A DNA stretch of 64,000 nucleotides from Ruditapes philippinarum (Eukaryota), in the NCBI RefSeq assembly GCF_026571515.1, contig NW_026864613.1, positions 62,001-126,000 on the forward strand, written 5' to 3'. Positions 9,694 through 61,694 of this stretch are shown piece by piece (the stretch's first letter is position 1; each line of letters opens with the position of its first letter). The position numbers and the translations under genes were made by a program. Below the pieces are notes generated by a model. The model did no database searches. It was not told the origin of the DNA and saw only the letters and a list, made by a program, of their open reading frames with translations.

Positions 9694-11005
9694 ATATTAG
9701 TTATAAATATTGTTGACAGGTTATATGGCCCTATATAAACGGTTGTTTGAAAATGTAACCCGAGCCTCTAGGCGAGGGTAATATTGCAAACAGACGTTTA
9801 TATACGGCAATATAACCTGTCAACGATCTTTATAGCGAATTTTTAATACAGCAAGCATCATTTTTTAGCGAAAAAGTAAGATTTCTTCATGAATCGACAG
9901 CAGCCGTGTATATTATTAGTTATAAAGATTGTTGACAGGTTATATGGCCCTATATAAACGGCTGTTTGTAAATATAACCCGAGCCGCTAGGCGAGGGTTA
10001 TATTGCAAACAGCCGTTTATATACGGCCATATAACCTGTCAACAATCTTTATAACGAATTTATATTACAGCAAACATCAATTTTTAGAGAAAAAAGTAAG
10101 ATAACTTCATGAATCGACAACAGCCGTGTATATAAAACTATATAAACGTCACGATTATCCAATGAAAAGCGACGTTACAAACGTGCAGTTTTATAAAATT
10201 TAAAAGCGACGTTACAAACGTGCAGTATTATAAATTTATAATACTGCACGTTTGTAACGTTACAAACGTGCAGTATTATAAATTTATAATACTGCACGTT
10301 TGTAACGTCGCTTTTCATTGGATAATCGTGACGTTTATATAGTTTTATATAAACGGCTGCTGTCAATTTATAAAGAAATCTCACTTTTTTCTCTAAAGGA
10401 AGGAAGTTTGCAGTATTATAAATTCGTTATAAATATTCCTGAAAGGTTATATGGCCGAATATAAACGGTTGTTTACAATATATTTACAAACAACCGTTTA
10501 TATAGGGTCATATAACCTGTCAACAATCTTTATAACTAATATTATAATACTGCACGTTTGTAACGTCGCTTTTCATTGGATAATCGTGACGTTTATATAG
10601 TTTTATATACACGGCTGCTGTCGATTTATGAAGAAATCTTACTTTTTTCACTAAAAAATGATGTTTGCTGTAATATAAATTCGTTATAAAGATTGTTGAC
10701 AGGTTATATGGCCGTATATAAACGGCTGTTTGCAATATAACCCTCGCCTAGCGGCTCGGGTTATATTTACAAACAGCCGTTTATATAGGGCCATATAACC
10801 TGTCAACAATCTTTATAACTAATAATATACACGGCTGCTGTCGATTCATGAAGAAATCTTACTTTTTCTCTAGCGGCTCGGGTTATATTTACAAATAGCC
10901 GTTTATATAGGGCCATATAACCTGTCAACGATCTTTATAACTAATAATATAAACGTCATGAGTATCCAATGAAAATCGACGTTACAAACGTGGATTATTA
11001 TAAAT
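9694..11005. mobile_element. Rearranged array of about 5 copies of a ~320-bp hairpin-dumbbell non-autonomous element (family 1)
   Basis: Plus-strand copies start at about 9694 and 9913. Tail-to-tail palindromes lie at 10211-10310, and minus-strand copies at about 10283-10540, 10541-10825 and 10826-10945. Intact copies have a ~140-bp hairpin with apex acccgagcc(t/g)ctaggcgagggt. Confidence 0.9.
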
Positions 11006-11046
11006 ATATAAACAGGGATGCATAATTTGCGAGAAATGTAAGATAT

Positions 11047-11399
11047 ATAGAGGATATTGAATGAGTGTAAGTTCAATACAGAATTTATTGCACGAGTTGA
11101 ATAAAATTATATTATGCGAGCCTCTGGCGAGCATAATATTATTTTATTCAACGAGTGCAATAAATTCAGTAATGAACTTACACGAATTTAATATTCTATT
11201 TATCACATACCAAAAATAAAGACCGTTTAAGGTGAAATAAGAGTCATATTTCATTGACGCGCCTATAGTATAACGCTAACATTTAGCGCGTCTTTACACT
11301 ATGTTTGTATAACGCTAATGACGTCACGTCAAAATATATGCACGGCCGTGCAATACCATATTTACGGAGTCGCAAAATCGGCACGGGTGTGTGATAAAT
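11047..11399 (+). mobile_element. Hairpin-dumbbell non-autonomous element (family 2), possibly Crypton/tyrosine-recombinase class
   Basis: Hairpin 11047-11198 with apex gcgagcc-tct-ggcgagc and three tandem G.A mismatches. Second inverted repeat is atttatcacatac (11198-11210) / gtgtgtgataaat (11387-11399). The class assignment is inference. Confidence 0.8.
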
Positions 11400-11589
11400 T
11401 CTCATATTTCATTTCGAAAAAAAAAATACACGAATGTACATGATTCGTTTTGAAAACTCTCTAAGTATTCATATATCTAATATTCATGTTAGTCTATATA
11501 GATAATTATACATATAATGCAGTTGCTACACTAAAGAATTTCAGGGTGTTGAATTAAGCAGAACATCAGAGTGATCTTATATCATACAA

Positions 11590-11685
11590 CGGGAAGCTGT
11601 TCGGACGCAAACACGGAAATTGGCAAATAATAACGGTCGTGGTACATTAGAAATCAATCATAGATGGCGTGCTGACTACAATTAT
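11590..11685 (+). repeat. Old duplicated block D (paralogue at about 16240-16335)
   Basis: aaattggcaa.taat.a.gg...tggtacattagaaatcaatcata.at.gcgtgct is present at both loci. Confidence 0.8.
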
Positions 11686-12685
11686 CCATTGAGTATCGGC
11701 CTGGGAAGACATAACTATACACTATGATAAATACCGTCTATCCGAGAACATTCCCCACTTTTCAATAGTTTGTACACATATTCAAAGATTTTCTTTGCAC
11801 AAAAATGTGTCAGAATAATTATGGACAATAGTTAATGGATCAATGGATCGAAATAAATGCAACGAGAAGAACAGGAAAAACGAAAAACATAGATGCCTTA
11901 TAGTTTTATTTTATGGATAGTAATAATTCTTGAAACACCATTTTAATGCACAGGAAGTCAACGAAATCTAAAGACTATAAGAAGTATTGCTTGTATCTCA
12001 TTTACAAAATCATTGATAAGTCTTTAACAAGATTAAAATCATAATACAACACTTAATACTTCAATACAATAAAAAGATTCTTAATGCCTTATGATAACCT
12101 AAAATAATTCAATGTAGTAATATCATAGAAAATGTCCATTTATTAATGATATTTGAGTACAAACAACACATTCTGATGAAAAACGTTGTCTCTAAGTACT
12201 ATAGAAATATGTTTAAGTATTTCGTTTGTGTTGTCTACCCTGATGAAACTAAAAGACAATATGTAAATAAAGGGAAATACTATTTCTTGGTTGGAGTATT
12301 TCTAACAACATAAAACCATGTAAAAAAACTTTGATAAATAGTGATTCCTCGCAAGCAATTCTCATTAAACATGTGGTATAATGAAAAAGTACAACATACC
12401 TCACGCCCGTTAGCACCGGCGTGAGCGGTTCTCAGTGTTCAAAACTTTAAAGTGCTGGAATCAATGATCCCAATGGACCAGAAAACTATAACAACACTGA
12501 AGTGTTGAATATTATTGAATATTCAATTATTAATTGATATTCAATAACCCACGTGCTACATGGACAGTTCTATCAATATCCTTCATAATTTTTCGGTTAC
12601 GCTCTGTTAAAAGAAATAGGAGGGATACTCTTTTTTATATTTCAGGCAACTTTTATATCTTATCTTAAACATTTTTAATTTTTTA

Positions 12686-12940
12686 TTTGTCAATCATCAC
12701 CTAAACACAATTTAGGCCATATGGCACTGAAACAGGAATTATGATTTTGGCTAACCACGGATGTTACAATTTAAAGCAACACCTGTGGTCAAAACCATCT
12801 CACCTACTTGAGCTAAGTGATGCATAGACTCTAGTAATTTGGACCCATTCAGGCGCCTCTTACGATCACGCAGGAATAAACGGTGGCTGTGATTCTGATG
12901 CCTCAACCGTTTAACGCAACCGCTCAGGCACAAGGGAGAA
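12686..12940. mobile_element. Decayed SINE/LINE-tail-like fragment
   Basis: Locally GC-richer island with aggccatatggc and gcgcctcttacgatcacgca, resembling motifs I recall from mollusc SINEs. Not database-verified. Confidence 0.3.
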
Positions 12941-13769
12941 GTTAGCAACGATGTACTTAAATAAAAATTAATAATTAAAATTCCTTGCATTGCTGCCTGA
13001 AACAAACTAAAATTAAACCTTATCATAGCATTCATCATAGTATCTTCTTTCGTTTAACAAATGGTATGCAATGAATGATGAAGGAAACATGGCACAATCT
13101 CACTACACAGTTGTTGATTAAGGCAAATTTCAGTTCTGACAAATCATTATCCCCTTTTAATTCAGTTATGTTAGGATACAATCACATCGCATCAATAATT
13201 TAGAAAAAAGAGAAATATTTAAAGCTCACGGAAATAATTCCAAAACGAGAACCAGCATAATTTTGAGCAATTATTTTCATAACTTGTATTAAATTGTATT
13301 AAACCAAAATGCATGGGAATAAAATAATTGTTTTAAATATGTCTCGAACAAACTATTATTTTGACATTTAATTTTCTTTATTTGTCTTTTAACTTTACTT
13401 TTGATTTCAGAATAGATAATGCCCGAAATTGTATTTTTTATGATAACTTAGGATATGAAGTCGCATAGTTCTACTTACTTAAAATACGCAAGTAAAATAG
13501 TTGTATACGCTCATAACATGTGCAAAGACAATATTTTTGCATTATTAGAACACCCATAATTTTCATAGAAAATATAAAACCAGCTTTTCTGCGACAAATT
13601 ACATTTTAAACGTTGTTTTCCTTGTTTAGAGCTTGAATAAGGAATGGATGGAAACTCAAAAAAAAAAAAAAAATTAAAAAATAAATAAATAAAATGCAAA
13701 GTTCATAGTTTTGTAAGTTAAGTAGTCTTACTTTTACAATCCTTTAAAATTCAAGATCTAAATGACAAA

Positions 13770-14900
13770 AGAAAAATGATGAAGTGTTGCACATAAATTT
13801 GTGCCAAGACTTAATCATAGTGATAAAAGTTTTATGCTTTGAAAGTTGTCTTGTCTGATTCAATGCAAGATCGACTTTAGTGAAATTATTGAGCATTCGA
13901 TGAGATAGGAATATCATATAGGAGAAGCTGATACTACTAAATTACGCATAACAATAATTATTTTTTCTCTAATGGGAAAAAAGTAATTATCGATAAAGCT
14001 TTTAAGCTATCTAGACATTTCTAGACCAATGAAGCAAGGACAATAACATTCGCAAAATGATTTTAAAGCTGGTAGTAAATATGGTTGGCAGTGATATTAA
14101 ATTGCATAAACCAAGCTTGACTGTTCTTTATGCTCCATTGTAAAAAACGAGGAAATTATTATTTGAATTTGCAGGGCATCGAATGAATAATAAACCATAT
14201 AAAAAGTTTGATGAATCTTTAGAAAAATATTTTGAGTTATATCTTTTGCGTGTCAGAGTCTAAACATACAAACTTTACTGCCTATCAACAACATCCAGAA
14301 TAATATTTATGAATTTTACTAATCTACAATACTGCAATACAAAAATATTGATGGAAGCCTCTCTTAAATCCATTAATATTTCGAATGTGAATTGGAGAAA
14401 ATTGAAGAAATGGTTTGCAAGTAAATCACTCTGAAAAAACTTGTTCCAATTTACTGTCAACTTTAACATTCCTTTATATCTTTTAAATATTTAAGACGTT
14501 CTATAGGCGTGAACTTTAGTTCCTCCAGTTTTCTTTCAACATGATGATATTTAGTGTATTTAAGTTAAAACCTTAAAGACATTAATCAATGGCATTATCC
14601 AAGTTTTCCTGAGATTCTAGTCTTTTTTACGTCAAAACATTCTCAATTTCCGACCTGAGCGACTCCGACAGAGCTCTGTAATCAATATGTTTGTTGAGAG
14701 ATATTTACACTTTGCTGGACATGTTTAATTTAATAGCAAAAAACTGGCGTGAAATATATAACAGATGAAACTGTGTTTTTAATTTAGTCCAAATCAAGAC
14801 ATTTAATATAAACATAAGTAGTATTTGGTTGCTATCATCAGTAAGTAAAAGGAACATAAGAAAGTAGTACAAGAAATACATTATCAGATGATCCTTATTT
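13770..14900. pseudogene. Possible decayed coding relic of unknown origin
   Basis: Protein-like reading stretches interrupted by stops: + strand about 14057-14263 (MILKLVVNMVGSDIK...*KTRKLLFEFAGHRMNNKPYKKFDESLEKYF) and - strand about 14470-14700 (HIDYRALSESLRSEIENVLT*KRLESQENLDNAID; HHVERKLEELKFTPIERLKYLKDIKE). No family recognised. Confidence 0.25.
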
Positions 14901-17900
14901 ATAAGCATCTTAAGAAATATTTCGTTAATGATTATCTATGTAAATAGTTTTACAAGGTTATGTCAATTTGAAATGAAAGTATCGTTGGGTCATAATTGCA
15001 TCTTTTTACAAATGTCATGAAAAGGTTTAATATACGTTCCAACATAAAACCAGAGTTTCATGACAACATGCCTGAGTAGGTAAAACTTTCAAAAGAAGTA
15101 GTTTTTACAAACAAATAATTATAAACCCAAAATATTGTATTGTTATATATAGAATAAAAGTAATATAAGAAGACCATCCAACATAAAGGCCAATTTTATA
15201 CCAGCATTACACCGCTCACAGGAACTTCAGCGAGACACACGCATTCATGACATTAAACCAATGCAAAATTGACAAATGAAAATAGCTTTCACACTTTGAA
15301 TGCATTATCTCAATGCAATGCATTTTGGAGCCAAATACAATCAGCCAACATTAATAATTCACATAAAAAGAGATTTAATGCTCGTGGGAAGTATTATAAA
15401 GACAATACAGGCAGAAATAATTCAAAAACATTATAGTGATTAATTGTGTTATACAAAAAGTGTGCGAATAAAATGTGAAATAGGATAAATGCAGATATTT
15501 ATTTGAATATTCAAATCAACGGTTTTTCTGGTCAATTGCTACTTGATTAATTTATAAAAAATATTGTCATAAATTTAACGTGAAGGGCTGCACAGTTTGT
15601 ACGAGTATTCGCTCGCCCAAGTTTGAGCGGCATCTTTTGTATCAATATGTGCCGCTGCATGCGGTATTTTATTACATCGATCTTCTTTGATAATCTTTTA
15701 AATTAATATTCAATGACATGTAAGATAAAGCTTTTTTCTGGTATATTTCCATGTTGGTAAATAAGAAAAAGTTTTACTAGTATGTAATAATTATGAATCA
15801 TAAACATCAATTATTTACTGACAAGAATTACTAAATTTTACAATTTTAAGACATTTTTTCTAGAATATAATTATCAAAGTGTGTGCATTTATCACATATT
15901 TTAATGCTGCAACATGAACTTATCTATTCTAACTAATTCAATTACTTTAAAAAGAACATAGAATAATAACTGTATACATGTAAGATAGGAATCAATATTT
16001 AACATTTAAACTAAGGATATTGTAATATAAACACTAAAATACAATGCTGATAACGCTCTCTGAAAATCACCATTTAAAAAAAAAAATCTTTACCGACACT
16101 GTAATCTTTTACGGGTTCTTGCCACTTTTTGTTGTCTGCATTTTGTTTTTGTTAATTTGTTGATTTAAAATGCACGTTTTTTAATCAGCATATACGTTAG
16201 TAATGTGAAAGCACGAACTTCTGAGTTTACTAATAAGGCGGGAAAATCGTTTGATGTAAACATGAAAATTGGCAACTAATTATGGCCATGGTACATTAGA
16301 AATCAATCATATATAGCGTGCTTACATTAATTATTAACGGGCGGTCGCTTGAAGAAGAAGCACGTAAATGCTCGAATCACTCGACCTTTATTTTTCATGT
16401 AGTTCTTTTCCCATTGAACTACACTTTACATTATGTTTGAAACGTTGTCTTAATTGATACAATAAATGAGAATTGATGCATTATTTTGTATTGGTATGAC
16501 TATATCATTGCACTCAAAGAACTGGTGTTAACATCGTGTGAGTAAAGTATTATATAATATTGATATAAAGTCCAGTGAGATAATGTTGTAAGACTGCCTT
16601 AGTTAAAAGAATACGTTTTATTTTTATTTTGGTGACTTGTGATGTTTGCCTTAGCATAACTTTAAATAAAAAGTACACCACACATAACATGATTTAAAAC
16701 AATTGAAATATACAAGTTTCATTTTCAAAAAACTTGTCTCACTTTAAAGGATTTGATAAAAACTTCCTAAGATAACTGCACGTTTTAAGAACAATTTTGC
16801 GTTATTGTTTGTGCTGCAATCGATCGAAATGAGACTCTTGGGACACGGAACATTTGAGTTGGCACATTGCTTTGACGACCTTCTACAATTTCAGTAATAT
16901 CACACTACACGGAGATATGTCTGTCTCTTTCTGGGCGATATTCATTCTTTTCTGTCCAAAACCTAAGTTTTGTTTCTATAGACTGGCCCGGCCGTCAATC
17001 ACTGTTACTATTTTAAGATCTGTTCCACTTGTTATATCCCCTTAACTCGGTTTTTAAGTTTAGAATTTAAATAGTCTATCTGAACGATATTTCTCTATAC
17101 TATTATACATTGACGTCTGTAGATTATATTTTTTCAACGGAGTTACAGAAGTCAAACCACACAATAGATTTTTATATTAAAATAAATGTAGACGGCGTTA
17201 CATGCCGCTATCTATATAAAGCAATATTGACTTTTTTCATTTACATGTGGGCGAAACATTGTGCAATCATTCTATCAGATGAGATTAGCACGCAAAATAG
17301 TACTAGCTTGAGCAATCTTGTCTGAATTAACGTCATAATCAGGGATTCTTATACCATTCCATAATACACGGACAATTTCATTCGTTAGGAATTCATGCAC
17401 AAACCTACAATAGCAGCAAGTCGAGCATCGACAATTATTTACGATGCATTTGTTTTAACGTTTTAACAATCTGATTATCAAAGATCAGTTTAAGAAATGT
17501 AATAAATGTAGGACGAGATAAAAAGCATTAAAATATCATCACAAAAAAAACAACCTTAAAATGTGTTTGTGTGTCTTTAAATTGTATAATGTAAGCTATA
17601 TAAATTTAGATAATATTTAAAAGGAATAGTTTCTATTCCATTTTCATTTCAAGAGTCATACAAATCTTTTCTTAATGTTTAGGTTATTATTCAGGCTTTA
17701 CTATTAGTTACATTTTAAAGCGTTATTACGCTACGTCCGTCGTCGTTAAGAGTAAATCCGCAAAGTATACGTTATACATGTATATACTTTGCAGCCATTC
17801 CGGACTAGAGTGAAGACAAACCCGACAGCGTTTGTAATTTGTTTGGTCAAAACATTAAATATATATAGAATGTACCGGTGTGGAGCTTATTTTGTAAGAT

Positions 17901-18335
17901 CCACTGTATGTAATGCGCATGCGCAAACAGGTTGCAACCATTGTCTTGAGAAAAGCCAGACTTTAAGACAGAAAAGAGTTTAAATCGTTCTAAGAGTCTC
18001 ATTAGGTAAAAAGAGTGTGATTCCTTTTTTTTGTTCAAGAGCACATTGCAATTTCCTATGATATCTCAGATATATTTCGGAAGTAACATAATTGAAAACT
18101 CTAATGTCTTGCTTGTACAAATCTCATGCTTTGTACATGGTTACTTTATAAAGGATTTCTATTTCAATTGTAATACTCAAATAAGGTGAAATTTTTAAGA
18201 AGATTATTTCGACGGCAGACAACACATTTTAATACATAAAATCTTGATCGTTAATTTCGCCGCGTCTCGACACATGCTGATTCTTTTCAATAGATTAGAT
18301 CGCTCCAAATAAGCTACGTGACTTGAATTCTATTA

Positions 18336-18600
18336 TTTATGCCAAATTTCTGGATACGGTCAACTGATAACGTAATCACTTAAAGAGTTCCGCTTAGTTT
18401 AATGCGAATTGTAAAATCTAATACTGATGTTATTTTTTTTTGCAAAATTTGATAACTTTATGCCACCGATTTCCTTTTATATTCATTCCATTCATGAATT
18501 TTACAATTTGTGCCAAATTCTTGATACCGCAACTGCTTACATATTCGCTTAGAGTTTTCCGCTTAATCTTATGCGAATAGGGTAAACCATTTAATACTAA
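18336..18600. repeat. Degenerate local duplication (~95-bp block, ~171-bp period)
   Basis: tgccaaatt..tggatac.g.caactg...cttaragagtt..ccgctta.t.t.atgcgaat occurs at 18336-18430 and 18507-18600. Confidence 0.75.
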
Positions 18601-19299
18601 CATATTGCAAATCAGGAATCACTTTTCATCACAGATTTCATTCCGTATTAGTCCCAGTTGTTCTGCTTATTCAAAATGTGAATATTGTGACTGTTTCACA
18701 GTTATCCGATTATTTTATTACACATGTAATATTATCAAGTGTACATTTTCTCGATATAATCACTGCTTTATGTTTTATGTCCAAATATCTTACAATAGGA
18801 ACGATGCAAGGATTTATGTAATATACGGAACAAACAATGACTTAAGTTGCCACTAGAAAGTTAAATACCCTCTCTCAAATACCATTAATACCATTGGCCC
18901 GTGTAAAACTAACGAAAGCAATCGTAGTGCATGTCGAAAAATGAAATTATTTTTCAATTTCTCTAAACAAAACTGGCAGATACATCAAAAGCGTCTAGAA
19001 GGAAATATATTGTAGAATGGTTAACAAGAAATTCAATAAAAGTCAGACAAAGAAAGTAATGTATATGTTGTTCTAAAAATAATCGTGTATGCTGTGTTAA
19101 GATGGCAAAAGTTAGTGCATGTACTTAGACACAATAAAAAATAATTTGAGAATAATAAATCAAATGATTTAAAAATTTAAAACTATAACTGGGCACAGAG
19201 TCCTAACAATTAGGTTAAATATATGACTATTTCATCGGTTCTTGGAATACAAGCAATGTATGTACTGTTTTATTTGAAAAGTATTTACTGGAAGTTAAA

Positions 19300-41026: not shown

Positions 41027-41393
41027 TTGTATCATAGTTTGGAGACCTTTCTGTTGAAAATGTGTCAGGGTTAAATCGTTTACATATACATGCACAGTGC
41101 GTTAACTGGAGTGCGGGTATTAGTTACCCGCACTCCAGAGCATGCCCATTGATTGGCTCATTTTTGCTGGGGTTTACATACTGTGACGAGCGACAGAAAT
41201 GTCATATTCAGATGTTCGTTCATTGGTTCATTTTTGCCGGGGTTTCATATTGTGACAACAGGGAACATGCTTTTATGTTTGACTATGATACAAAAGAGAA
41301 AGAACACCAAAACACTCGGCAATCTGATTAATACTCGGGGCTACGCCCCCTCGTACAAATCAGATAGCCTCGTGTTTCGGTGCTCTTTCTATT
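41027..41393 (-). mobile_element. Hairpin-dumbbell non-autonomous element (family 3), minus orientation
   Basis: Hairpin about 41294-41393 with CTCG/CTCG mismatches on + (CGAG/CGAG on -) and a minus-strand C-GTA-G apex. Second inverted repeat is ttgtatcatagt (41027-38) / actatgatacaa (41282-93). Confidence 0.75.
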
Positions 41394-44243
41394 ACTTATC
41401 TTGTATAGACATGTGATATGCCCTAAACACGCATATGGTTACATATTTAAATTGCATGTATTTTGTTGTTTCACGTTTTCTTTTTAATTCCATATCACTA
41501 AATAGAATTATAATTGTACTTTTTCTAGATTTATTATAACTATAATCACATTATATTAATTATGGAAAACGAAATATATGTTATATACAATACAACAACG
41601 ATGTTTTGCAGTATCAAAATAAATGTCGTAATGAACATTTTTTCCATTCTTTCGTTATTTTATTGTGCTTCTATTCTATTTTGTCATGAAAACCTACATA
41701 AATAAAGCTCCTTCTTGTAAAATACAAATGGAATGGAAATAAAGTTAATGACATTTAAATGTCCTTAAGCACTGCCTCTTAAAGATTGAGCAATTAATAA
41801 TTGATAAAATCGAAATCAACTTTATCTTAATATAAGACAGAGCAAAGTCTCAAAGGAATTATATAAAACTATACAATTTGTATATGCAAGGAATATTTTA
41901 TTTCGTAAAACTATCAAGATTTACATAAAACTTCTATTTTATCAAGTGCTTCTTATTTACAATTCTATTTCCATTATCAGGATTCAATTTAAAAGTGAAA
42001 TTGAGTGGTTAAAAGTAAGCTCACAATTTCTATAGCGAGACAGTATAAACAAGCTGACGACATGTAAAAGCTGTACTTAAATACAATGCACTCAATGTTT
42101 CTATAATTTGATATTTAAATTTCAAAACCTACAAAATGCATTTATTAACCCAGTCGGCTTTTCAACAAAACAATTGTGGCATGAATGACTAAATCGTGAT
42201 TCATCAGTTTTATTTCGTAAGCGTAAGTTGTAAGACCTAGAAATGATATAACCTTGTTTCACAAAATCTTTCTGTTTCCTTGTTTCCAAAATGTTACTCG
42301 TGGACTTTATTGCTGAACCTTTTCCTTCCCCCTTAACATTTTGAAATTTAATGCAGTTTAAGTGAATAAGTATTTTGTATTGACATCAAATACTCAACAT
42401 TTCTATTATATAAAAAAGAAACTTTTATCATTTTTAATGTTTATTTATTTGATAACTTTACAACTGCATAAGTTTTTGTATACCAGTTTTGTATTTATAT
42501 TAACTGGAAATGAAATATTTCCAATCAAGTCTTTTTTGTTGGATAAATACAAATGTTGTACGAGTTCAATTTATCGAATGAAATGTTTAAACTTAGTCGA
42601 AGTACCACTTTGTTTACATTTGGATACTTTTTAACACATTATTCTTACTCAGTGAATGGTTTCAATTGTCAAAATTCTCTAAATCCATTATCAAAATAGT
42701 ATAGACATGTTTGAGCTTTTTAAAGAAGACAAATGTACTCATTTCTGAGGAGGTTATGCGTGCGTTTAAGTACTTGTCAACCAGACAATGAATGATTGTC
42801 AATGCTCAAGCAACTACACAACGTAAAAATCCTTGCACTTTTTCATTATCACTCTTGTACAGACTCAGTCAAGTCAAGCCGAGTCTGCAATTTTCGTGTA
42901 ATTCATGTAATTATAGAGACAAGCCTACTAATGTTCAACAATTATAGTAATAGTAATATACTTTTCTTTGCACGCATATGACACTTAGCACTTTACAAAC
43001 AATGATCTTCAATGTTCTTAATGCTCGTACAAATTATGATCAATGGCATACTCTTATTTTACGTTTTTAAGTGTAGTAATATAGAACTAGAGAATTCCTT
43101 TCTGTTATAGCACGAGTTAAACTTTGTGATATTGTTCAATTAACGTTGTTTGCAAATGTAATTTAAATAAATGTGAATATTTTGTTTTCTTAGTCTAATT
43201 AGTCAATAAGACTGTATAGTCCGTCTTTTCTATTAATAATTGTACAACTTATTTTACAAGAATTAAATGTTTAACAAAAATCATCCTCGGCTTTTAGTAT
43301 TTGATTTTCGTGATCAATGTGTATATACTACAATCTACGATACAATATTCACAAAAGGTCATTCTCAAATTTCATAAAGTGCGATGAATATGTGTGCCGA
43401 TGATTAGTAAATTAAACAAACAGTAAAAATCTTTTTTCAAAACACATCAAAAATATAGTTAATTATAATTTTTTTTTTAAACACATCATTAATATAGTTA
43501 ATTAGAAAGAGTACAAAGCATATGCTTACCGTTGATTAAGCGCAATTAATAATGACGTTATGATGCATTGTCGTCCTCTTATGCGTGAAACAATTGATAT
43601 TAATGATAATGAATTTGATCATCTACGCGGAAAGTTTAACATAACTAAAAATGCAAAAGGGATTGATTTGAACAGTGATTTTATTCTTTAATGCACATAT
43701 TTCAATGTTTCTGATAATCGCATTTTGCATGAAAAATCTTGAACAACAAACTGAAATTAAAGATTTTAGCATATCATTCAAAAGAAAAAAAAGGGAAAGA
43801 AATGCAATGCTTCACGCGTGTTCAATAAAAAATTACGTATCAAAGTTATATGTAAATATTCAGGTTTTTCAAAAATCAAACATTAAGGTTAGCCAGTTGT
43901 AGCATATTTCTGACTCATAAGCCATGATGTGAACTTTCTTTAAATATGTGACTATGTATATAGTAGTTCTTGAAAGTCAAACGAAAGTTTTGCTGCACTC
44001 AACACGTTCCACCTTAGACACATTAGGATCACTGTACTGACATGACGCGAAGCTCAAGGGATTAACTATTATCTAACTTCTAAACGTTAATTGATGAAAG
44101 TGCCAGACTTGTTAATATTCTAATTGGTCACCGAAATCATATAATATAGACCCAGGCTTATATGATACATATTTTACAGCAAGAACAACGTTTAGACTAT
44201 GGGGATAACACAATTATAATCTGTTTGTTTTTGCTTTAAAAAA

Positions 44244-44278: not shown

Positions 44279-44318
44279 ATAAATAATTACTGAATGTTCG
44301 TGTTTGTGTGGCTTGTCT

Positions 44319-51100: not shown

Positions 51101-53192
51101 AACCGTACATGATTGGTTAATTGACCTTTTCGAAAACCTAGCTAAATACCGTTTGCCGGTACGTTACGGATTTACCTGTAGGGAATTAGTCCGAATTACA
51201 CCTAATTAAGAACAAAAAACTATTACGTGATATTTCTAATTTTCTATAATTATTTTACCGTTTAAGGTGGAAAAACTTGAATGATGTGTTTGAAAATTAT
51301 CAATGTTTCTTTAATATCTATCTCAAATTTTACAAACAATAAATTGTTTATACTGAAAATCTACAAAATTAAAATATTTGTAGTGGCATCTGCCATAATA
51401 AATAGAGATATTTTCTGCGTAAACTTGTGTGTTTACTTTATTTATTGTTTGCTCGGAATTATTCATAAAATGGTAGGCCTATTTAATCATTTTCTTAAAA
51501 AGAAATAATTGTTTTATGTTCGACCTTCTCCGGTCTTCAACGGTCACCAGTTTCCAAAGACCTTCTTCTATATTGATCGTTTATTCAATTGTCAACTATA
51601 TTCCTGATACAAACGTTTATTTATTCCCCATCCCCAAATAATGTTGAAAATAGTTAAATGAAATATCTTTATATCATTAAAATGTTCACCACAGGAAACC
51701 ATTTTACTTGTACTCTCTTTACATTCAATGTGTATATAACACTGCATGTTTTAATAAAATTGTCTTTTAATATGGTAGAAACACATCTGTTTGGTAAGTT
51801 TTATTTTATACTGACATTATGAAGGTTGTAAAGTGGATCGTTACGAGAGATGGTGGACGTCTGGTGTATAGTAGAAAAAGAAGCTGAAAATAGTTAAGTT
51901 GTGACATCAAAAAACATTAAATATTCGTTTCAATAAATAACTAAATTTTGTAGTAAAATTAGTGTAAAGAGAAAATATTATGCCTGTTATAGCTTTAAAT
52001 CGTCACCATAACATCCTTTGAAACAATGTTGTATTACACTGTTTTATCATTTTATTACACAATATCAAATAAAAATAAGCAACAACAACAACAAAACATA
52101 ACCATCCTCCGACAAAAATCAACAAAACGACAGAACACCCCCCCCCGCAAAAAACAGAGAGAGAAAAGACAACACAACAGCATTAACGACCCGCTACTTA
52201 TTTTTCGTGGGAGTCAATACCGGTATATTGCAATGAAAATTTCTCGTACTTTAGATTCATAATCTTATAAATGACAACTTGAATTATTTCGTACACTACC
52301 AGTCAACATATATTAGAAAAGAAATAACACCATGAAAATAAAATCAATAAACATGCCCCTATATTGGCTGCTCCCATTCAAACGATGCAAAGAAATATAA
52401 ACATACCGGTACTTGATTAATGCAATATTTGCATGTTACCAGGATTATGCTTTTGGATGAATCAATGTTTCGCTTACATAAGAATATGTTCCATATAAAT
52501 TCAAATCAATCATTAATGAATATGTGATTTATCAGAAAAGAAACGCTATTACCTTCCAATCATTGTCATTAGATTTAAACAGCAACAAGCTTATAATATA
52601 CATGTACAATTATTGTATGGTGATGAGGATCAAAGGACTTGGCTAATGTGAATATCATATTAGCATGGTCTTCACCGATTTTATTATATGACCAAATTAA
52701 AATTCTTCATTTGGCAAGTTTCCCTTTTCACGAAAACAAATCCTAAGAAGCGTAGAAGTTGTAAACCTTTTTTTGGGCAAGCGTTTCCATTTTAAAGCGG
52801 GTATATAAATGTTTCTAAAAAGCGCATCAAATCGCTTTTTTAGTTTAGGTTTTACTCTCTGAGAAAAAATGCTGTCTGAATCTCTAATTTACACATGATG
52901 TATGTTTTATGTAACGTTGTTTTTGATTGGTCGGCTTGTACCCTACATGCCGTAAAGCCATTAACGATTGGTTTCTTATAAAAGGTTTAATGTAGCACAA
53001 CCCATGATGTTACAATAGTTGTAGTGTTATAATTTCAAAATTTCATCTTTACTAGAATTGTTTTACCTTAAAGTAAATTGTTCTACAATGGACACATTTT
53101 CAAAGTGTATTTCAAATTTTGACAAAAAACTATACAAATGAATTACTTGGGTATTTTTATAAACTACTGCTCAAGGATAAAAAACGTTGATA

Positions 53193-53279
53193 GGCTCCTT
53201 GCCACTGGTTCTTGTTGCTAGGTCGTGTGGGCGTTGCGTTCATTGAACGCCGCCTTTCCTTGTTGATCTTCTTTATCAT
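53193..53279 (+). repeat. Interspersed repeat fragment (copy 2 of 8769-8853)
   Basis: Ungapped similarity to 8769-8853. Confidence 0.8.
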
Positions 53280-53626
53280 TTTTAAGTGATTTAGTAATAA
53301 CATTTTTTTTAATGAATAATGATATTTTTTCTAGACATACTAATAATCTGATGCATAATTATATGATACCGGATCATGTATTTCACACTTGCCTAAAACA
53401 TCTACATATAATTCTTTTGTGGTTTATTATGTGCGATACTAAATTCTATCAATTATTTATCGTATAACAGGCGTATGTCTAGTGTAGACCAATTCACTTT
53501 AAACGTTAATAAATGTATTTGCACTAGTAATGCATTTAAACTGAACATTTTACAGTTTTTCAAAAGTTTAAACACCATGCTTTTAGATTAAGTGAATTAA
53601 TTCACAGAACTTGTCATACAAATATT

Positions 53627-55159
53627 TATGGAACGCCGTGACTGTCTTATGTAATCAATGTTTTTGTTATCTTGTGAAACGATGATATTATTTTGTCGTA
53701 TGAGCATGTTAACATGTGCAATTTATATCATGTCTTGTCAAAGGAACATGCTTACATGTACAAACATCATGTTAACTTGTCAAATTATTATGATGACATG
53801 TGCAGACAACCTGCTAACTTGTCAAAGTATCGTGATGACTTGTGCAAATGACATGGTAACTTGTCAAAGTATAATGATGACTTGTGCAAATGACATGGTA
53901 ACTTGTCAAAGTATAATGATGACTTGTGCAAATGACATGGTAAATTGTCAAAATGTATTGATGACTTGAGCAAACGACATGTTAACTTGTCGAAATATTG
54001 TGATGACATGTGCAAACAGCTTGTTAACTTGTCAAAATGTCATGATGACTTGTGCAAACGCCAAGTTAACTTGTCAAAGTATAATGATGACTTGTGAATA
54101 GGACATGTTGACTTGTCAAAGTATAATGATGACTTGTGCAAACAGCATGTTAACATGTCAAATAACCATGATGATCTGTGAAGACAACATGTGAACTTGT
54201 CAAAGAATCGTGATGACTTGTGCAAATGACATGTTATCTTGTATCATGCTGACATGTCAAAACGTACTGTTAACTTGTCAAAGTATTATGATAACTTGTG
54301 CAAATGCCATGCTAACATGTCAAAATTCCATGATGACATGTGTAAACAGCATGTTAACTTGTCGAATTATCGTTATGACATGTGCATACAGCAAGTTAAC
54401 TTGTCCAAGTATCATGATGACTTGTGCAAACGACATGTTAACTTGTCCAAGTATAATGATGACTTGTGCAAATGCCATGCTAACTTGTCAAAATTTCATG
54501 ATGACATGTGCAAACAGTATGATAACTTGTCAAATCATCGTGATAACATGTGCAAACAACATGCTAACTTGTCCAAGTATCATGTTAACTTGTCAAAATT
54601 TCATGATGACATGTGCAAACAACATGTTAACTTGTCAAGGTATCGTGATAACATGTGCAAATGCATTGGTAACTTGTCAAAATATCATGATGACTTGTGC
54701 AAACGACATGTTAACTTGTCAAATTATCATGATGACTTGTGCAGACAACATGTGAATTTGTCAAAAAATCGTGATGACTTGTGCAAAACACATGTTAACT
54801 TGTTAAGGTATTATGAGCATGTCATCACAATAATTCGACAAGTTAACATGCTGTTTGCACATGTCATCATGAAATTTTGACAAGTTAACACGTCGTTTGC
54901 ACAAGTCATTATGATATTTTGACAAGTTAACATGTCGTTTGCAAAAGTCATCATGATACTTTGACAAGTTAACATGTTGTCTGCACATGTCATAATGATT
55001 ATTCGACAAGTTAACATGCTGTTTGAACAAGTCAGCATTGTCTTTAGACAATATATGATGTAAATTGCACATGTTAATATGCTTAAATGACAAAATAATA
55101 TCATCATTTCACAAGATAGCAAAAACATTGATAGCATAAGGCAGTCACGGCGTTCCATA
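53627..55159. mobile_element. 1.5-kb non-autonomous TIR element with internal 42-bp satellite, IS3EU-like
   Basis: Termini TATGGAACGCCGTGACTG...CAGTCACGGCGTTCCATA flanked by AATATT on both sides (6-bp TSD; palindromic, so the boundary is ambiguous). Internal 42-bp units (2x21) invert at about 54810. TAY...RTA ends with 6-bp TSDs are recalled IS3EU signatures. Confidence 0.85.
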
Positions 55160-56063
55160 AATATTGATCACTTTACACCTAACGTTACATTTTGAACCTG
55201 ATGATTTATTAGTTTCTTTTCTTCGTCATACTATTATCTAATTCTTTACTCAAACAAAGACCTTTTTGCAAATGTCATTTTCTCCTGGAATAAGGATCTT
55301 ACAGGCAGATGAATTTTCGTTATGTGTAAATGACGCTTGTAGACACTATATTTCTGCCGCTGAGTTTTACCTGTATATTTACATGTATGAATATATAAAA
55401 TACAAGCAGTTGATAAGATCTTTCAAAATGAGTTATATATTTATTGTTTTAATATCTACTTATGATGGAATGTATATTGTTTAAAGTAAATAAAAGGAGA
55501 AATCCTGAAACAATAACTAGCATAAGTCTCTGGAATTATCAATGGATTAAGTTTAAAAAATGCATCGTTACAGTTATGATACCTTAAAGTCAAATATTCA
55601 CATAATGAAAAATAAAATCACCTATTAAAAGCAAATTATTGTTCTCACAACCAATGCCATACCTTTTTAACGCTAATCAAGGGCATCATTTTCTGTCTTT
55701 ATTTGAATCTTAAAGCACAACATTGTGAGGAGCAAAAACCAAAACTATTGCATAACAATGCAATTTCTGAATTCATTGGTAATCTAATTCCCCGACAGAG
55801 CTATTCTGGATGAATATTTAGGAATAAATTTATTTATCCACAAAAGGTCGTTTATAACTTAATTATGGATAAAGTATTTTATATTACATGTTCATGGAAT
55901 TAATATTAAGTTTGATTATTAAGATTTGTTAAATATTGCTGACTAAGCATGTAAATGTTATTCCATCAAAGTAATTATCAGCAAGGCTAGTATAACTTAT
56001 TATTTTGAATATTCTTCCAATGACTTGATTTACATTGTTAGAGTACAAACAAAAACAAACTTA

Positions 56064-56112
56064 AATAATAAAAATAAATGAATAAATAAATAAATATATA
56101 AATAAATAAATA
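56064..56112. repeat. (AAAT)n simple repeat
   Basis: Imperfect aaataaataaata tract. Confidence 0.7.
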
Positions 56113-58800
56113 CTTGACGAAACGCATAATTAGATGTAAGTCTATGCTATGTAATTTACATTTCATTCAAATATACAACAGAACAACTTGAAACACTTCA
56201 GCATTTTGCAATGGTTTACACACAATTCCTTGAGCTTATACTTATGTTTCTGTTCGTTTATAGTTTTGTCTGGTAACAACAACAAAAAAGCATTACAAAT
56301 AATTCAAACAATAAGTTATATATTAAAAATACATATATTTATCATTGTATTGGATATTTTATATCAGACATACTGTACACTTTAAAAAATCTGAATTAAA
56401 AGAAAATTGAATAAATAACAAAAATATTTGATTTATATAGTGATAAAAATGACTTTGAGATTGCACACAGAACAGTTAAAGCTGTGTTTGTTTTGTTTTT
56501 AATTAGCAGAGAAGTATTTTAAGAAAGGTGGTGCATTTCGCTTTTCGTCTGAATATCAAACGTACAGAGGAGAAAAACAGCTATCTTTTATTCCATTTAT
56601 ATTGCATGGTTAACGGTATCGCATATATCGCTGAAAACAGGTTTATTAACCTTTTTAAACAAAAATAGATATTATCAATCAAAAAAGAGAAAAAATAGCT
56701 TCTATTGATTTAACTATAAAGTTCGATAGCTTTAGATGCCTGGTTGTACTCATTGTATTATTTATTAATGGAGGAAAACTACGCACGCGATCAAGTGAAC
56801 TCCTAATCATTCTCTTTCCTGAAAACGCAAGCTTTCTCACCTTTTTCCAATTTTATCAAAGCTCTCTAATATTTCGCTTAAAATATAACTGGTACTTATT
56901 TCACATAAACTGCTAAATTATGAAAATACTGGGAGTTCGTCTATTTAGGATATTTAGGGCTTTTAAAGAAAGCATTAAGTTAATTAATTGGTATTCTTAT
57001 TATATGTGAAAACAGTTTAGTTTTCTATGAAACAATTTGATAATTTATTTAACATAGCAAATGTTATGAATCCTTCCTAGTGTGTCAGGAAACGTTTGGC
57101 GAATGTAACAAATTTAAAACAATATATTCAAAACATCAAGCATATACGCATGTATCATCAATAATAAATAAATGATCCTAAGACACTTCACACACTTCCT
57201 TTCTTTTGACAGACTAAGGAAATGTATTTGAATGTATTATTACACAAAACTTAACACGCTATGAGGCGTCGGATGCTACGTCAATAAACCAAATGAAATT
57301 ATGAAAATTACATCTGTGCTCAATGAAGTTCACCATCGATTGCAAGAACACGCTAAAATAATACATATTCTCTTAATGAAGATTCAAATCATACAATAAC
57401 ATAACATTTCATCATTTTTTCTAATTCATGTGATTAAAGTTATATGAATATATTGTAAAAAATGCATCAACCCCTAATGACATGCACTCACTTATATTGG
57501 TTTCTTTTAAAATGCAAGGAATAAAACTTTTACCTGTTCTCAATGTAAAAACTCCACAGGACAGTAATGCAATTGTTTACTTTTAACAACTACTGTATTA
57601 AATTATGGCATGCAATTACTTTAAAAAATCAATTTATGTGCTCAGTCTTCCCAGTGACATTGATAAAGTCATTGTAAAAAAAATACGTGAATGTAATTGA
57701 TTTTATTTATTCATGGGACACAGTTTATTAGTTATGGACAACCTGGTACTATTCAGACATTAGAGTATGTTGCATTTGTATGTTGTTTAGCTTTGTTAAT
57801 TTGAGTACTTAACCAACCTTGATGAACCATCGACAAATAAACATTTCGCACCTATATTTCTGAAAACTTCAAAGGATGAGTCAATTGAAATTAAAGATGT
57901 AACAAAACTGAAGCAAACATATCGTTATAGAAATAAAACAATAAAATTAAATGTGGCTTAGTGCAAAGTAATTATTTCTTCTGGTACGATACAGTGTTAG
58001 CAGTAGTTTAATTGAATGACAAACGAAAGTGATTGTTTCCGATCACAGACGATTGATTGCTCCGCATGATTATTATAAATACACCCAGGCATTTTTCTGC
58101 TTTATAGATATTTCACAAATTGATTTTTAATTTGACTTTTAATTAACTCTATGGAGATGGTAGATTTACAGAAAGTCGGCACTGGCACCGTATTAACCGA
58201 GTTTAAACTCAAAATTTTAATTGCGATGGCAATGCTTGCAACATTTTGATTTTTTTCGTGTAAAATTGTGAAAATCGTTAAATTATTATAAAATTTTCTA
58301 CACATACGTCCGTATACTTAACTAAACATAGTATACAATCATGAATCTATACAACATATGTCAACTTTTATCAGTATCATCTATGTTTTTAAACTCGAAT
58401 ACTACTTTTAAAAAATATAATTTCATATCTTTTAACGATATAATATGTCCATGTTTTGGTATATGATTTTTATTGCAGACGTATATATGAAAATCTTAGA
58501 AAATCTTATTGAAAATGCCCAACTTAGTATAAAAGACTGCATGAACAATGTTTAAGGAAGCTTTATTTGGAAATGTATATGTGTTTTTTTATCAAATAGA
58601 AGTGCTATACTCCTAATGGAACTTTGTATTCATATTGACTGTGCTTACCTTAAGTATGTAGAGTTTAAAAAAACAACACGTCTTTTTTGTGCTAAACAAA
58701 TTTTTATTTTATAATTAAGAGACTGTAAAGCAATCACCGGTAATTTCAAATATCAATTTTGAGCATATGGTAATTTATCCTTGAATCAAATGCATTAAGA

Positions 58801-59040
58801 TGTTTGTTTGTTCTTGTTTGTTTTGGGGTTTACGTCACACTGACACTCGAATAGGTCATAGCGACGTTCAAACTTTACTGGTGTACCTCAGGTACCCTTA
58901 CATGCATTATTTCAGGCACGAACGGGTCCCTGAGTAGAATCGCCGACGTTTCGTTAGCTAGCTGGATAGTTTCCTCACATGAAAGAATCCAGTTCACATA
59001 GTAGAATGTTCGATCAAGAACACCACTACGCGAGGCGCAC
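58801..59040 (-). mobile_element. Decayed tRNA-derived SINE with (AAAC)n tail
   Basis: tgtttgtttg tail followed by tttacgtcacactgacac...ataggtcata.gcgac...tgcattatttc...gtagaa.c.ccgac.tt.cgt.agc.agctggat...ttcctcacatgaa. This matches a common bivalve SINE body from memory; the head is eroded. Confidence 0.65.
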
Positions 59041-61359
59041 ATCAGTGATTAAAATATATTGCATGAAATTGATGTCATTTTTATTATAATCTTCTCAATT
59101 ACATGATAGCTGGATGAATTACTTAAATATTTGCTATTTTATAACATTTTCGGAACAGTATGGCTGAAAGGGAGGAATGCATTTGTTTTATATTGTTTAA
59201 TGGGTTTAAACACAAAGACGGCAAAACTGAATAAAATTCTAGCGGCCCAAGCTCACGGAAATGCATGAATACTATTCATTGGACAAAGGAATTTGAATTT
59301 TTAGTAAAATGTAACATCACACTCTAACTTTACCGGCTAAATTACAAATATGAATTTTGTCATTACAATATTAACTTTTTCAATACAAATTAAATTAATA
59401 TCCGTATTAAGATTATGGATATTCAATATCAATTTCGCGCCATTCTGATAAACAAGGTGCCTTAAGCCCGATTAGAAGAATAAATGAAGTAATGTATAGA
59501 ACGATCTTTTAACTCGTATGATATTAACATCATTTGTTTATCAAGGTCTTTAATCAGCAGATGATCGATCTTGACACGATTATTGTCTTTTTATTATTAA
59601 GATTCCTACAAAAACAGATTAAGATTAATATGTATTTGTCAATAAATCACTTAAACGATAATTAAATTAGTGAATTACTGTAGCATTTGGTTTCAAAATT
59701 ACTATATGATTAACCGATACTTTTGATTCTTTGTGTTCCGTTACTAAATCAAATAAATAATGCAACGATCTACAATTTCGTATTTTTATCCATAGCATTA
59801 TCCACAAAGATATTTGAATGGTATTTCATTTTTATTTACCAAACCATATCAAGTATGTATTGTTCTTTGTAATAAATTTCTTTTATTCTCATTTTCTAAA
59901 TTAATTTTGAGAGCTTTTTCGTTTTTGTGTGTTCGTATTTTCACCGGTTTAAGCAATAATGCAAACAAGATACAGTTGACGTCAATATGACAACCTCTTC
60001 TGGAGTACTCTTGATATAATTACCACTCATAAACATGTCGATTTTACCTAGCAGTGACATGAAATTTAGTTATAGACTGTACATTCTGTAAATATCAATT
60101 TGAAAGACACAAAGAGACACACACGCTGATATTAAGAGAAAACTCGCGTCTTTACATGGAAATGTAATCAATAAACCATGCCAGTAAATTAAATAAACAC
60201 GCCATTCAAATCCAGGAGAAGAAGAAAATATGAACGGAAATATCAATTTATGACCTTGTTTAATTATAAAAACACGTTCCCTAACATTTATAACGTCAAA
60301 TTGTATAATAACACTTACTAATGCCCTGATTAATATATGAAGAAATATTTTAATCAATGATTGTTATCTGATCTCTCTCAAACAGCAAAATATAAGAAAT
60401 ACCTTAGATGAAGATGGTTCGTTGTAATATATGCACATACCTATTTAAAAAACAAGAACTTTTTATCTCATAACTCATTATCTTTCAATTTATTTCAATT
60501 TAAATCCGTTTATTTTTTTTTTCAATATATGTACATGAGACTGATCATGTTTAGTTTGGTAACGGAAAAATCATTCAGTGCAAGACGTAATATTCATTCA
60601 TAAATTGTAACAACAATGGAGACGATGATGCAATGTAAGCCATAACATAACTTAATTTATCGTTATGGGTGCGTTTGTAACGTTTAAAAACAGAACATCT
60701 AGCTTAATAATGCATTATGATAAGTTTCCAATCGCATTTGATGTCAATTTTTAAAAAATTAGATCTAAAGCATAACTGACTGAGATGATATTACAAGTCT
60801 ATAAAGTCCATGTTAAACAGACCAATTACCTGAAAACATTCCAGAATTACTATACACTTGGGATTGTAGTTTTCAAAATCATACATGGCGATGACAAAGA
60901 CAACAAAAACAACTATAAAACCACACACACAAAAGGCAGATACACACCGATGAATACCAAATATTCAATGATTCAATAACATGATTAAACAAAAAACAGC
61001 TTCTCTATGTTTACCTTACCATAAAACGTAAGAACCTAAGTGCATATCGATACGAAATCAGTAAAGCATTTTATTTCATTTTGTCGGGTTCTAAGTTAAA
61101 CTGATACCATAAGGGTCATATTGCTTTACTGGAATAGAGAATTATTATTCTGTCAGGTATGAATGCTTACCAGAGCAGAACAAGTTAACTGGATAATTTC
61201 CCTGTTTACACTACCATAGTCACTGGATGATACATTAACTATACGTACCCAAGGAGGCCTCTAAAATGCACAATGTCTATCACATAAACAGGTGAATCTA
61301 TTAACATATAATTATCTTAGTAATTTCAGGAGTCAATATTGTGATAATAAATTATAAGT

Positions 61360-61694
61360 AATAGATATACCATTGCTGCGTTGACGATTTCTGGGTTTGC
61401 GTAAATTATACCATAATCACGTGACCTTTCTTATGCCTTAACCTCACGAGACGAAGTCGAGTGAGGTTGCATAAGAAAGGTCACGTGATTATGGTATAAT
61501 TTACGCAAACCCAGAAATCGTCAACGCACCAATGGTGTATCTGTTTTAACCTATAGCTCCGCCCAGAAACACTTACTCCTTCGATTTTCAAAACTGAAAA
61601 TTATACCATAGTCTGGGTATGGTATAATTTACGGTTATTGGAAATTATACTTGGAAGAATTTTACATAAGAAGCGCTGAAGAGCTATAGGTTAA
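61360..61694 (+). mobile_element. Hairpin-dumbbell non-autonomous element (family 4), apparently young
   Basis: Near-perfect ~90-bp stem 61360-61545 with apex ctcaCGAGac-GAA-gtCGAGtgag. Second inverted repeat is ttaacctatagctc (61546-59) / gagctataggttaa (61681-94). Confidence 0.9.

Follow-up and report, generated by a model that had tools for sequence, protein, structure and literature searches.

How would four small repeats, each carrying in its interior the complement of its own two ends joined together, move through an animal genome, and are they one kind of element or four? The question is raised by elements E1 to E4 of the window, i.e. the whole 64-kb stretch of Ruditapes philippinarum DNA analysed here. 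The explanation we propose, with moderate confidence, is that the four are non-autonomous members of one superfamily, which would move by single-strand cut-and-rejoin through a dumbbell or a circle.

The four elements are real repeats. A first look through the whole genome gives 375 candidates for E4, 1969 for E3, 1841 for E2 and 2681 for E1, far above chance, and the 40 scored per family are near full length, with identities of 94-100% for E2-E4 and of 86-98% for E1. These include 29 distinct copies of E4, each with other flanks, 32 copies of E3 in differing flanks and 34 distinct copies of E2; a lower-copy relative, the L078 family, has more than 400 candidates. The first-pass annotation of this DNA was thus right about the presence of the four elements, but the empty sites and the genome matches shift its coordinates. 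E4 occupies 61358-61694 of the forward strand (337 bp, from its copies, a nested empty site, an empty allele and the fold) and E3 occupies 41027-41395 of the reverse strand (369 bp, from its copies, the empty sites at L060 and L050 and the fold); their earlier limits, 61360-61694 and 41027-41393, had left out the 5' GT of each element (61358-61359 and 41395-41394, respectively). E2 lies at 11047-11397 on the forward strand (351 bp, from distinct copies, empty sites and the mismatch table) instead of 11047-11399, and E1 at 9914-10196 on the forward strand (283 bp), the ends at which the genome matches stop, the earlier 9913-10235 having taken in a piece of a second copy.

The ends were set by paralogous empty sites and by one empty allele in another individual. 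In 15 aligned empty-site comparisons, corresponding to about nine insertions, the insertion is clean and nothing is duplicated. Ends defined in this way, as the first-pass annotation had recommended, do not run on into terminal inverted repeats (TIRs) with target site duplications (TSDs), and the termini are not mutually inverted, which upholds its statement that the elements have neither. The E4 of the window is missing from a contig of another sample (run X12), whose empty allele lacks exactly 337 bases, with a four-letter ambiguity, TAAG. Copies with identities of 98-100% and this insertion polymorphism between individuals show that the elements are still moving. The left flank reads T-A-W in 26-28 of 29 copies of E4, 25-28 of 32 of E3 and 32-34 of 34 of E2, and the right flanks hardly depart from background composition, save for the AT that follows E2; in the window, E4 stands between ATAA and GAGAC, and E2 between ATAT and AT. 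The right ends are TTAA, ACAA, ATAA and ATAA, so that YAA is common to all four. Insertion is 3' of TAW, and the YAA right end mimics this target.

Between these ends, every element is laid out as 5'-(0-2 nt)-L-tip-L'-R'-spacer-R-3', and L'R' is the reverse complement of R joined to L in all four families and in one diverged relative of E2. The order of L arm, apex, L'R', spacer and R first read from the sequence is therefore borne out, now with exact ends, and L' abuts R' consistently across the four, with a junction bulge of 0-2 nt (GT in E3 and E4 and a single nucleotide in E1; E2 has no bulge). In E4, the L/L' hairpin (61360-61545) carries the tip CGAG-ACGAAGT-CGAG at 61447-61461 and is followed by R' (61546-61559), the spacer (61560-61680) and R (61681-61694); as in the worked example of the first-pass annotation, the last 14 bases are matched exactly, as reverse complement, by 61546-61559 (TTAACCTATAGCTC), and the left end pairs with the bases that run up to 61545. 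On the reverse strand, E3 has its hairpin at 41393-41294, the tip CGAG-GGGGCGTAGCCC-CGAG at 41353-41334, R' at 41293-41283, R at 41037-41027 and a spacer holding two direct repeats of about 39 bp and a hairpin with a 14-bp stem. The hairpin of E2 (11047-11199) contains three tandem G.A modules, the tip at 11117-11131 and CGAG at 11093 and 11152, and its R' and R lie at 11200-11211 and 11386-11397. In E1, the hairpin (9914-10059), with the tip CGAG-CCGCTAGG-CGAG at 9980-9995, precedes an R' at 10060-10071, one base off exact abutment, and an R at 10185-10196. When 360 kb were scanned for this geometry, with offset controls that discriminated poorly, E1-E4 alone rose above noise.

For E3 and E4, the minimum-energy structure and the centroid given by DNA folding are both the two-hairpin dumbbell, with z-scores of -8.7 and -21.1, respectively, equalled by none of 100 shuffles. 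In the predicted folds, both helices are closed to the last base. The contiguity of L' and R' would let the helices stack and place the terminal bases of the element next to each other, like a nick opposite an unbroken complementary strand.

The four families had been taken as unrelated and devoid of obvious primary similarity. This view has to be given up, since they share the 5' start (GT)AATAGA or ATAGAG, the YAA 3' end and, on the same strand in every family, a tip of the form CGAG-miniloop-CGAG with tandem G.A pairs, whose GNA and CGAAG mini-loops are known DNA mini-hairpins. Common termini and a common tip motif argue for one superfamily instead of four convergences.

The stems also distinguish the two strands. 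Read on the L..R strand, their mismatches comprise 11 G.T or T.G against no A.C, and 19 G.A or A.G against two C.T or T.C; five more families from the flanking DNA give eight G.T against one A.C. This bias indicates that one strand has been selected to remain foldable. R' and R covary (GG:CC replaced by T:A), and among E2 and its diverged relatives three pairs of the L hairpin are altered on both sides, a weak signal that 73 of 500 shuffles also attain. By nearest-neighbour DNA energy, the two strands are almost equal, since that model ignores G.A pairs, and the mismatch spectrum was used in its place. RNA, too, gains stability from G.T pairs and from G.A pairs in tandem, and a transcript is therefore another candidate for the folded strand.

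The R-L junction predicted from the geometry is present as genomic DNA. Exact head-to-tail dimers are found at L041, L035, L070, L069, L083 and L091 and at 10284-10824 of the window; in the tandem E1 pair of L091, the junction reads TATTATAA followed directly by TATTAG. The partners of a dimer are 97.4-98.2% identical, against means of 97.9-98.4% for random copies, and being no closer than random copies they must be independent insertions at the end of a resident element, which rules out a read-through origin. The read joints listed include no R-to-L back-joint, although rare forms are invisible in contigs, and neither circles nor dumbbells were observed as molecules.

The ends, the target, the splint geometry, the genomic R-L junctions, the polymorphic insertion and the selection on one folded strand, all observed here, would be best explained by single-strand chemistry and a circle. 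In the model we propose, L would pair with L' and R' with R, the internal complement thereby acting as a self-splint that holds the two ends together. An enzyme would cut the L..R strand at two points, just after the TAW of the left flank and just after the YAA that ends the element, and the partners would be exchanged, which would seal the donor backbone and release the element as a single-stranded circle folded as a dumbbell. Run in reverse at any exposed TAW, the reaction would insert the element on its 3' side, and a resident copy could likewise receive an insertion at its YAA end.

Our first candidate for the enzyme is a Crypton-type tyrosine recombinase acting on the folded strand, by analogy with the integron integrase on attC, and the second is an HUH Rep of the Helitron2 type. 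As in Cryptons, TIRs and TSDs are absent and there is a short microhomology between target and element end (the TAAG ambiguity; TAW against YAA). Conservation sits 5' of both cut sites, a pattern no less suited to HUH enzymes like those of IS200/IS605 than to a tyrosine recombinase. The genome contains 98 Phage_integrase matches and 94 Helitron_like_N matches, many of the latter within open frames of 2000-2640 aa. In the window and the copy loci (360 kb), a Pfam scan of 65 ORFs of at least 100 aa gives RVT_1, GIY-YIG and others, and neither a recombinase nor a Rep; by coordinates compared by eye for the 40 listed copies per family only, no copy lies within 10 kb of a listed recombinase or RepHel place. 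Tentatively, the folded single strand might be moved by animal Crypton-type tyrosine recombinases or by an unrecognised animal HUH enzyme: the element would then be its own recombination site, a dumbbell whose active strand is marked by tandem G.A pairs and which inserts 3' of TAW and duplicates nothing. If so, it would be a eukaryotic counterpart of the chemistry of integron cassettes and IS608, with thousands of active copies in this clam.

The strongest competitor, possible but in our judgement unlikely, is that these are non-autonomous rolling-circle elements of the Helitron2/HLE2 type, relatives of HINEs, mobilised by one of the many intact RepHel genes that this genome carries. On the complementary strand, the elements read 5'-TT, a TIR of 11-14 nt, and at the 3' side a second TIR with a terminal stem-loop directly after it, and HLE2 is described with a 5' ATIR 0-2 bp from the end, a 3' ATIR immediately upstream of the hairpin and ATIRs of 8-15 bp (Bao and Jurka 2013, PMC3627910), a layout matched in the HELIANO paper (PMC11417382). 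In the clam elements, R/R' (11-14 nt) would provide the short TIRs and L/L', abutting R', the stem-loop, on the non-foldable strand only. Helitron2/HLE2 elements resemble them further in the lack of TSDs, in asymmetric TIRs of 8-18 nt, one of which is immediately followed by a hairpin, in small high-copy derivatives, in central repeats (those of E3, in tandem, resemble the repeats of bivalve HINEs; PMC7492417) and in tandem copies, and HLE2 is abundant in bivalves; the Helitron_like_N matches and the conservation on the 5' side of both cuts, which suits an HUH nuclease, point the same way. HLE2, however, inserts between T and T and has T runs at its ends (PMC4067079, supplement 2), whereas the clam target is TAW followed by any base, the ends are GT or AT at the left and YAA at the right, and terminal T runs are absent. 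The foldable strand is moreover the complement of the one on which the HLE2-style reading is made, and known HLE2 3' hairpins have 5-10 bp and stop short of the terminus, whereas the clam hairpin arms of 45-90 bp reach it and abut the TIR exactly, so that the joined ends are fully templated. The dimer partners, too, are independent insertions and not read-through products. The Helentron supplements share no terminal words with the clam elements, and their subTIR and empty-site tables follow another target rule. To our knowledge, a tandem G.A code has not been described for HLE2. The likeness to HLE2 had not been raised in the first-pass annotation.

A quite improbable alternative makes the elements non-autonomous partners of DIRS, in which L'R' would be the internal complementary region (ICR) on which a terminally incomplete cDNA is closed into a circle before integration by a tyrosine recombinase. 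An internal stretch complementary to the joined termini is indeed the geometry of the DIRS ICR (background in PMC13465315), TSDs are absent in both, the genome has many tyrosine recombinase genes, strand-specific pairs of the G.U type and G.A pairs are a usual feature of RNA, and E4 is covered by RNA-seq reads. That coverage, however, does not differ between the strands, and 84% of it continues into sequence unlike the window, which makes read-through from other copies a possible source. Beside the ICR, DIRS elements have ITRs, whereas the clam elements have an ICR-like stretch but an L and an R that are not mutually inverted, and the tips are GNA and CGAAG mini-loops, which are DNA mini-hairpin types. 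DIRS elements measure 4-6 kb and encode RT and YR, whereas the clam elements have 283-369 bp, encode nothing and show no visible promoter or poly(A) features. No Rfam family, the hammerhead and other self-cleaving ribozymes expected of retrozymes included, reaches its gathering score anywhere in the 64-kb window.

It is very improbable that two adjacent foldback MITEs (L..L' and R'..R) gave the junction complementarity as a by-product: each half is itself an inverted repeat and the R'..R half of E4 resembles a TTAA-flanked mini-element, but about nine insertion sites and one allele have or lack L..R as a single unit, which rules out two nested MITEs, both halves occur together in dozens of copies with unrelated flanks, four families share one geometry although their arms are unrelated, and the mismatches are strand-biased. 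A MITE of a DDE transposon (e.g. piggyBac, Tc1 or PIF) is ruled out by the lack of inverted termini and of any duplication at about nine sites.

The self-splinted dumbbell we propose thus combines traits of several known systems. Animal Cryptons (CryptonA/CryptonI) likewise have neither TIRs nor TSDs, their non-autonomous derivatives exceed autonomous copies (PMC3212892), and PMC13465315 describes a short microhomology between one of their ends and the target. Bacterial IS200/IS605 elements (IS608) also have no TIR or TSD, hairpin ends, insertion 3' of a short left-flank sequence and a fixed right end, and they are strand-specific, with a circular single-strand intermediate of joined ends whose clam counterpart would be the putative circle; the likeness is one of design only, since they are prokaryotic and have small subterminal hairpins and short guide sequences instead of a full internal complement. 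We know of no Y1 transposase from animals, and of no published terminal hairpins, internal junction complement or single-strand step for Cryptons. Integron attC sites are imperfect palindromes active as a folded strand, in which unpaired or non-Watson-Crick bases set the strand, the crossover falls within the folded site and head-to-tail arrays arise from separate insertions; they differ in being bacterial, of 60-140 nt and placed beside cargo genes, whereas the folded site of the clam elements is the whole element.

We know of no eukaryotic transposon whose recombination site is a folded single strand, as it is in integron cassettes or IS608, and our observations suggest a single-strand mode of movement not described in animals. 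How animal Cryptons, with neither TIRs nor TSDs, have their ends recognised is an open question, for which the clam families offer a testable system with exact ends, a three-base target rule, a predicted R-L junction and a strand prediction. Should the partner be a Rep-helicase, the Helitron2 design would gain another target rule, new to it, and a joint of the ends that is fully templated. Either way, the families form a sizeable, still active share of the small repeats of this genome and merit annotation as one class.

The surroundings of E1 are themselves built of E1 sequence. A partial copy on the forward strand (positions 1-220 of the element, 91% identity) lies at 9695-9913, immediately upstream of the full element, and 10197-10281 holds right-end fragments with their right ends facing, tail to tail. 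The two copies of the exact head-to-tail pair at 10284-10824, both on the reverse strand, occupy 10824-10542 (97.5%) and 10541-10284 (82%), and three more fragments follow at 10825-11003 (element positions 172-220 and 1-77 on the reverse strand, 227-283 on the forward strand). A tRNA scan gives one tRNA-like match, in a neighbouring repeat.

What the present analysis adds to the four small elements of the window is an internal splint, exact ends and a target rule. The elements (E1, 9914-10196; E2, 11047-11397; E3, 41027-41395, minus strand; E4, 61358-61694) are those already recognized in the first-pass annotation, with corrected coordinates, and a genome-wide search places each of them in a big repeat family of the 1.41 Gb genome (31% G+C, 15,874 contigs), with 375 candidates at first look for E4, 1969 for E3, 1841 for E2 and 2681 for E1. 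The 40 copies scored per family are nearly all full-length relative to the query, at 94-100% identity in the case of E2-E4 and 86-98% in the case of E1; since the flanks vary between copies, the mobile unit is the segment running from L to R. The flanks of each copy were joined and compared with the rest of the ~360 kb formed by the window and the copy loci, which yielded 15 aligned comparisons with paralogous empty sites, representing about 9 insertions. These sites assign the GT preceding AATAGA to the element in E3 and E4, and establish ...GTGTGATAA as the right end of E2. None of the 15 comparisons reveals a target duplication and none of E1-E4 carries terminal inverted repeats. Furthermore, in a contig of X12, a sequencing run of another sample from another study, 61354 is followed directly by 61692. 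The 337 bases left out, with a four-letter ambiguity (TAAG), match exactly E4 61358-61694 inserted after ...ATAA, and another individual's contig therefore lacks this E4 copy.

The elements had been regarded as unrelated, without obvious primary similarity, a view contradicted by the 5' starts, the 3' ends and the hairpin tips that the families have in common. E3 and E4 both begin with GTAATAGA, E2 with ATAGAGG and E1 with TATTAG, YAA closes all four families, and all four hairpins bear at their tip, on the same strand, two CGAG stretches separated by a mini-hairpin of 5-12 nt. Where CGAG faces CGAG, the pairs are C-G, G.A, A.G and G-C, so that sheared G.A pairs stand in tandem; the opposite strand would have C.T and T.C instead. 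E4 has CGAAG as its mini-loop and E3 has C-GTA-G, both being classic stable DNA mini-hairpins, and the E2 hairpin contains three such tandem G.A modules. A scan of the flanks uncovers five further families with the same tip in loci cut out around element copies: one in L070 (minus strand, 850-930) and L019, two in L076 (1171-1189, plus strand; 2398-2414, minus strand), one in L078 (150-400, minus strand) and one in L079 (3317-3329). The L078 family, with more than 400 candidates, starts with AATAGA; the plus-strand L076 family has an E2-like start, ATAGAGGATAT, and often hosts E2 insertions. Judged by sequence, E1-E4 form one superfamily rather than four convergent families.

Once the ends are corrected, each of the four families has an L'R' junction that reads as the reverse complement of its right end fused to its left end, as the first-pass annotation had proposed. 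The match is exact in E2; in E3 and E4 a GT stays unpaired, and in E1 the L' arm lacks one base. This geometry is retained by a diverged relative of E2 (84%; in L065, L076 and L032), whose R'/R stem has a two-sided change from GG:CC to T:A. In the L hairpin of E2 and its diverged relatives, three pairs are altered on both sides and 92% of cells pair, a covariation that is weak against shuffles, 73 of 500 attaining the observed value. The two abutting helices are predicted as both the MFE and the centroid structure (ViennaRNA, DNA parameters; z of -8.7 for E3 and -21.1 for E4). When all the non-Watson-Crick positions of the L/L' stems are tabulated on the L to R strand, E1-E4 and the E2 relative show 11 G.T/T.G against 0 A.C/C.A and 19 G.A/A.G against 2 C.T/T.C, the corresponding values for the five further families being 8, 1, 9 and 4. 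If such a palindrome were decaying as duplex DNA, G.T and A.C would be equally frequent; the bias therefore indicates selection on the L to R strand to pair as a single strand. The two strands have almost the same nearest-neighbour energy, because the model leaves out G.A pairs.

The three bases 5' of the insertion point are T-A-W, found successively in 28, 26 and 24 of 29 E4 copies, 25, 28 and 32 of 32 E3 copies, and 32, 34 and 30 of 34 E2 copies, for a chance expectation of ~0.1 for T-A-W at this base composition; the base on the 3' side is free in E3/E4 and A-T in E2. The right ends of the elements are TTAA, ACAA, ATAA and ATAA, and thus mimic the TAW target, the likeness extending 1-2 bases further in E2 and E3 (A at -4 in 28/34 and 22/32). 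Exact head-to-tail dimers, in which ...GATACAA is followed directly by GTAATAGA... in E3 and ...GTGATAA by ATAGAGG... in E2, exist for E1 too and include ~6-10% of sampled copies. TAW occurs about once per 25 bases, and random insertion would hardly ever strike an end of a copy already in place. The two partners of a dimer are no closer to each other (97.4-98.2% identity) than random copies (means of 97.9-98.4%); the dimers are therefore separate insertions drawn to the resident right end rather than read-through or local duplication. Nested insertions are also observed (E4 in E4, E3 in an E2 relative, E2 in an L076-type family), a member of the L070 family directly follows an E2 end, and the window at 9695-11003 is a nest of E1 pieces.

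Three loci deserve mention. In L020 (G000:C8107:599999-600671), the terminal 70 bases of E4, starting after an internal TAA and including the right end, are present as two tandem copies beside an E4-in-E4 insertion, and it looks as if the internal TAA stood in for the left end. In L023 (1113-1408), an 85% E4 relative lies where the stem of a host hairpin passes into the loop, and the two flanks of the relative are mutual reverse complements; this may be a hint of a preference for exposed loops as targets. In L065 (1914-2585), two copies of the E2 relative in opposite orientation meet at a perfect palindrome, TTATTACACTAGTGTAATAA, and may reflect template switching at a hairpin.

The most likely route of movement would be a single-strand cut and swap through a circle or a dumbbell. 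In the folded strand, the stacked helices would hold the 5' end next to the 3' end on an uninterrupted complement, with the scissile bonds following TAW and YAA at the joint. Cutting at both bonds and swapping partners would seal the donor and release the element as a single-strand circle or dumbbell, and the reverse reaction would insert it after TAW or after a resident YAA end. Copy numbers in the thousands require the coupling of this reaction to replication. No R-to-L back-joint appears among the listed contig joints, contigs dropping rare forms. The strand bias, the exact R-L junctions and the empty allele lend real support to the mechanism suggested in the first-pass annotation, which is plausible with a putative intermediate and a putative enzyme.

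Neither a recombinase nor a Rep is encoded in the window and copy loci (~360 kb). Among 733 Phage_integrase candidates in the genome there are 98 scored matches, and many of these lie within intact frames of 330-410 aa; Helitron_like_N has 94 matches, of which many belong to open frames of 2000-2640 aa. A Crypton-type tyrosine recombinase is one candidate: animal Cryptons have neither terminal inverted repeats nor target duplications and possess abundant non-autonomous derivatives (PMC3212892), and Cryptons display microhomology between the target and the element end (PMC13465315). At 11-14 bp, the R stem is about as long as the arms of recombinase sites usually are, and the dimers are built by separate insertions, as are integron arrays. 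The other candidate, an HUH Rep, would account for the conservation on the 5' side of the two cut sites, a feature shared with IS608, and the complementary strand reads as a Helitron2/HLE2 layout (PMC3627910, PMC11417382); however, HLE2 elements insert between two T residues and have T-run termini, both lacking in E1-E4, whose foldable strand is the wrong one for that reading. An RNA/cDNA route of the DIRS type, which uses an internal complementary region of this kind, is possible but less likely, the elements having no ITRs, no ribozyme, mini-loops of the DNA type and the same RNA coverage on both strands.

The E3 spacer (41106-41256) contains a perfect hairpin with a 14-bp stem (41106-41138) and direct repeats of ~39 bp (41149-41187 and 41219-41256), which resemble the tandem repeats at the centre of HINE/pearl elements in bivalves. 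ACGTCA/TGACGT-type motifs, e.g. aatgacgtcacgtcaaa, occur in the spacer of E1 (10140-10180), in that of E2 (11280-11300) and in that of the E2 relative (L065), and could be a protein-binding site or due to chance. Elsewhere in the window, the segment 54195-55170 is tandemly repetitive, with open frames of at most 216 aa in several frames, and is satellite-like, a gene not being obvious. Finally, a repeat of ~700 bp at 62062-62760, whose read depth is ~10x that of E4, has at its end a sequence resembling tRNA-Ser (62730-62805, minus strand); the repeat is probably a SINE of tRNA origin.
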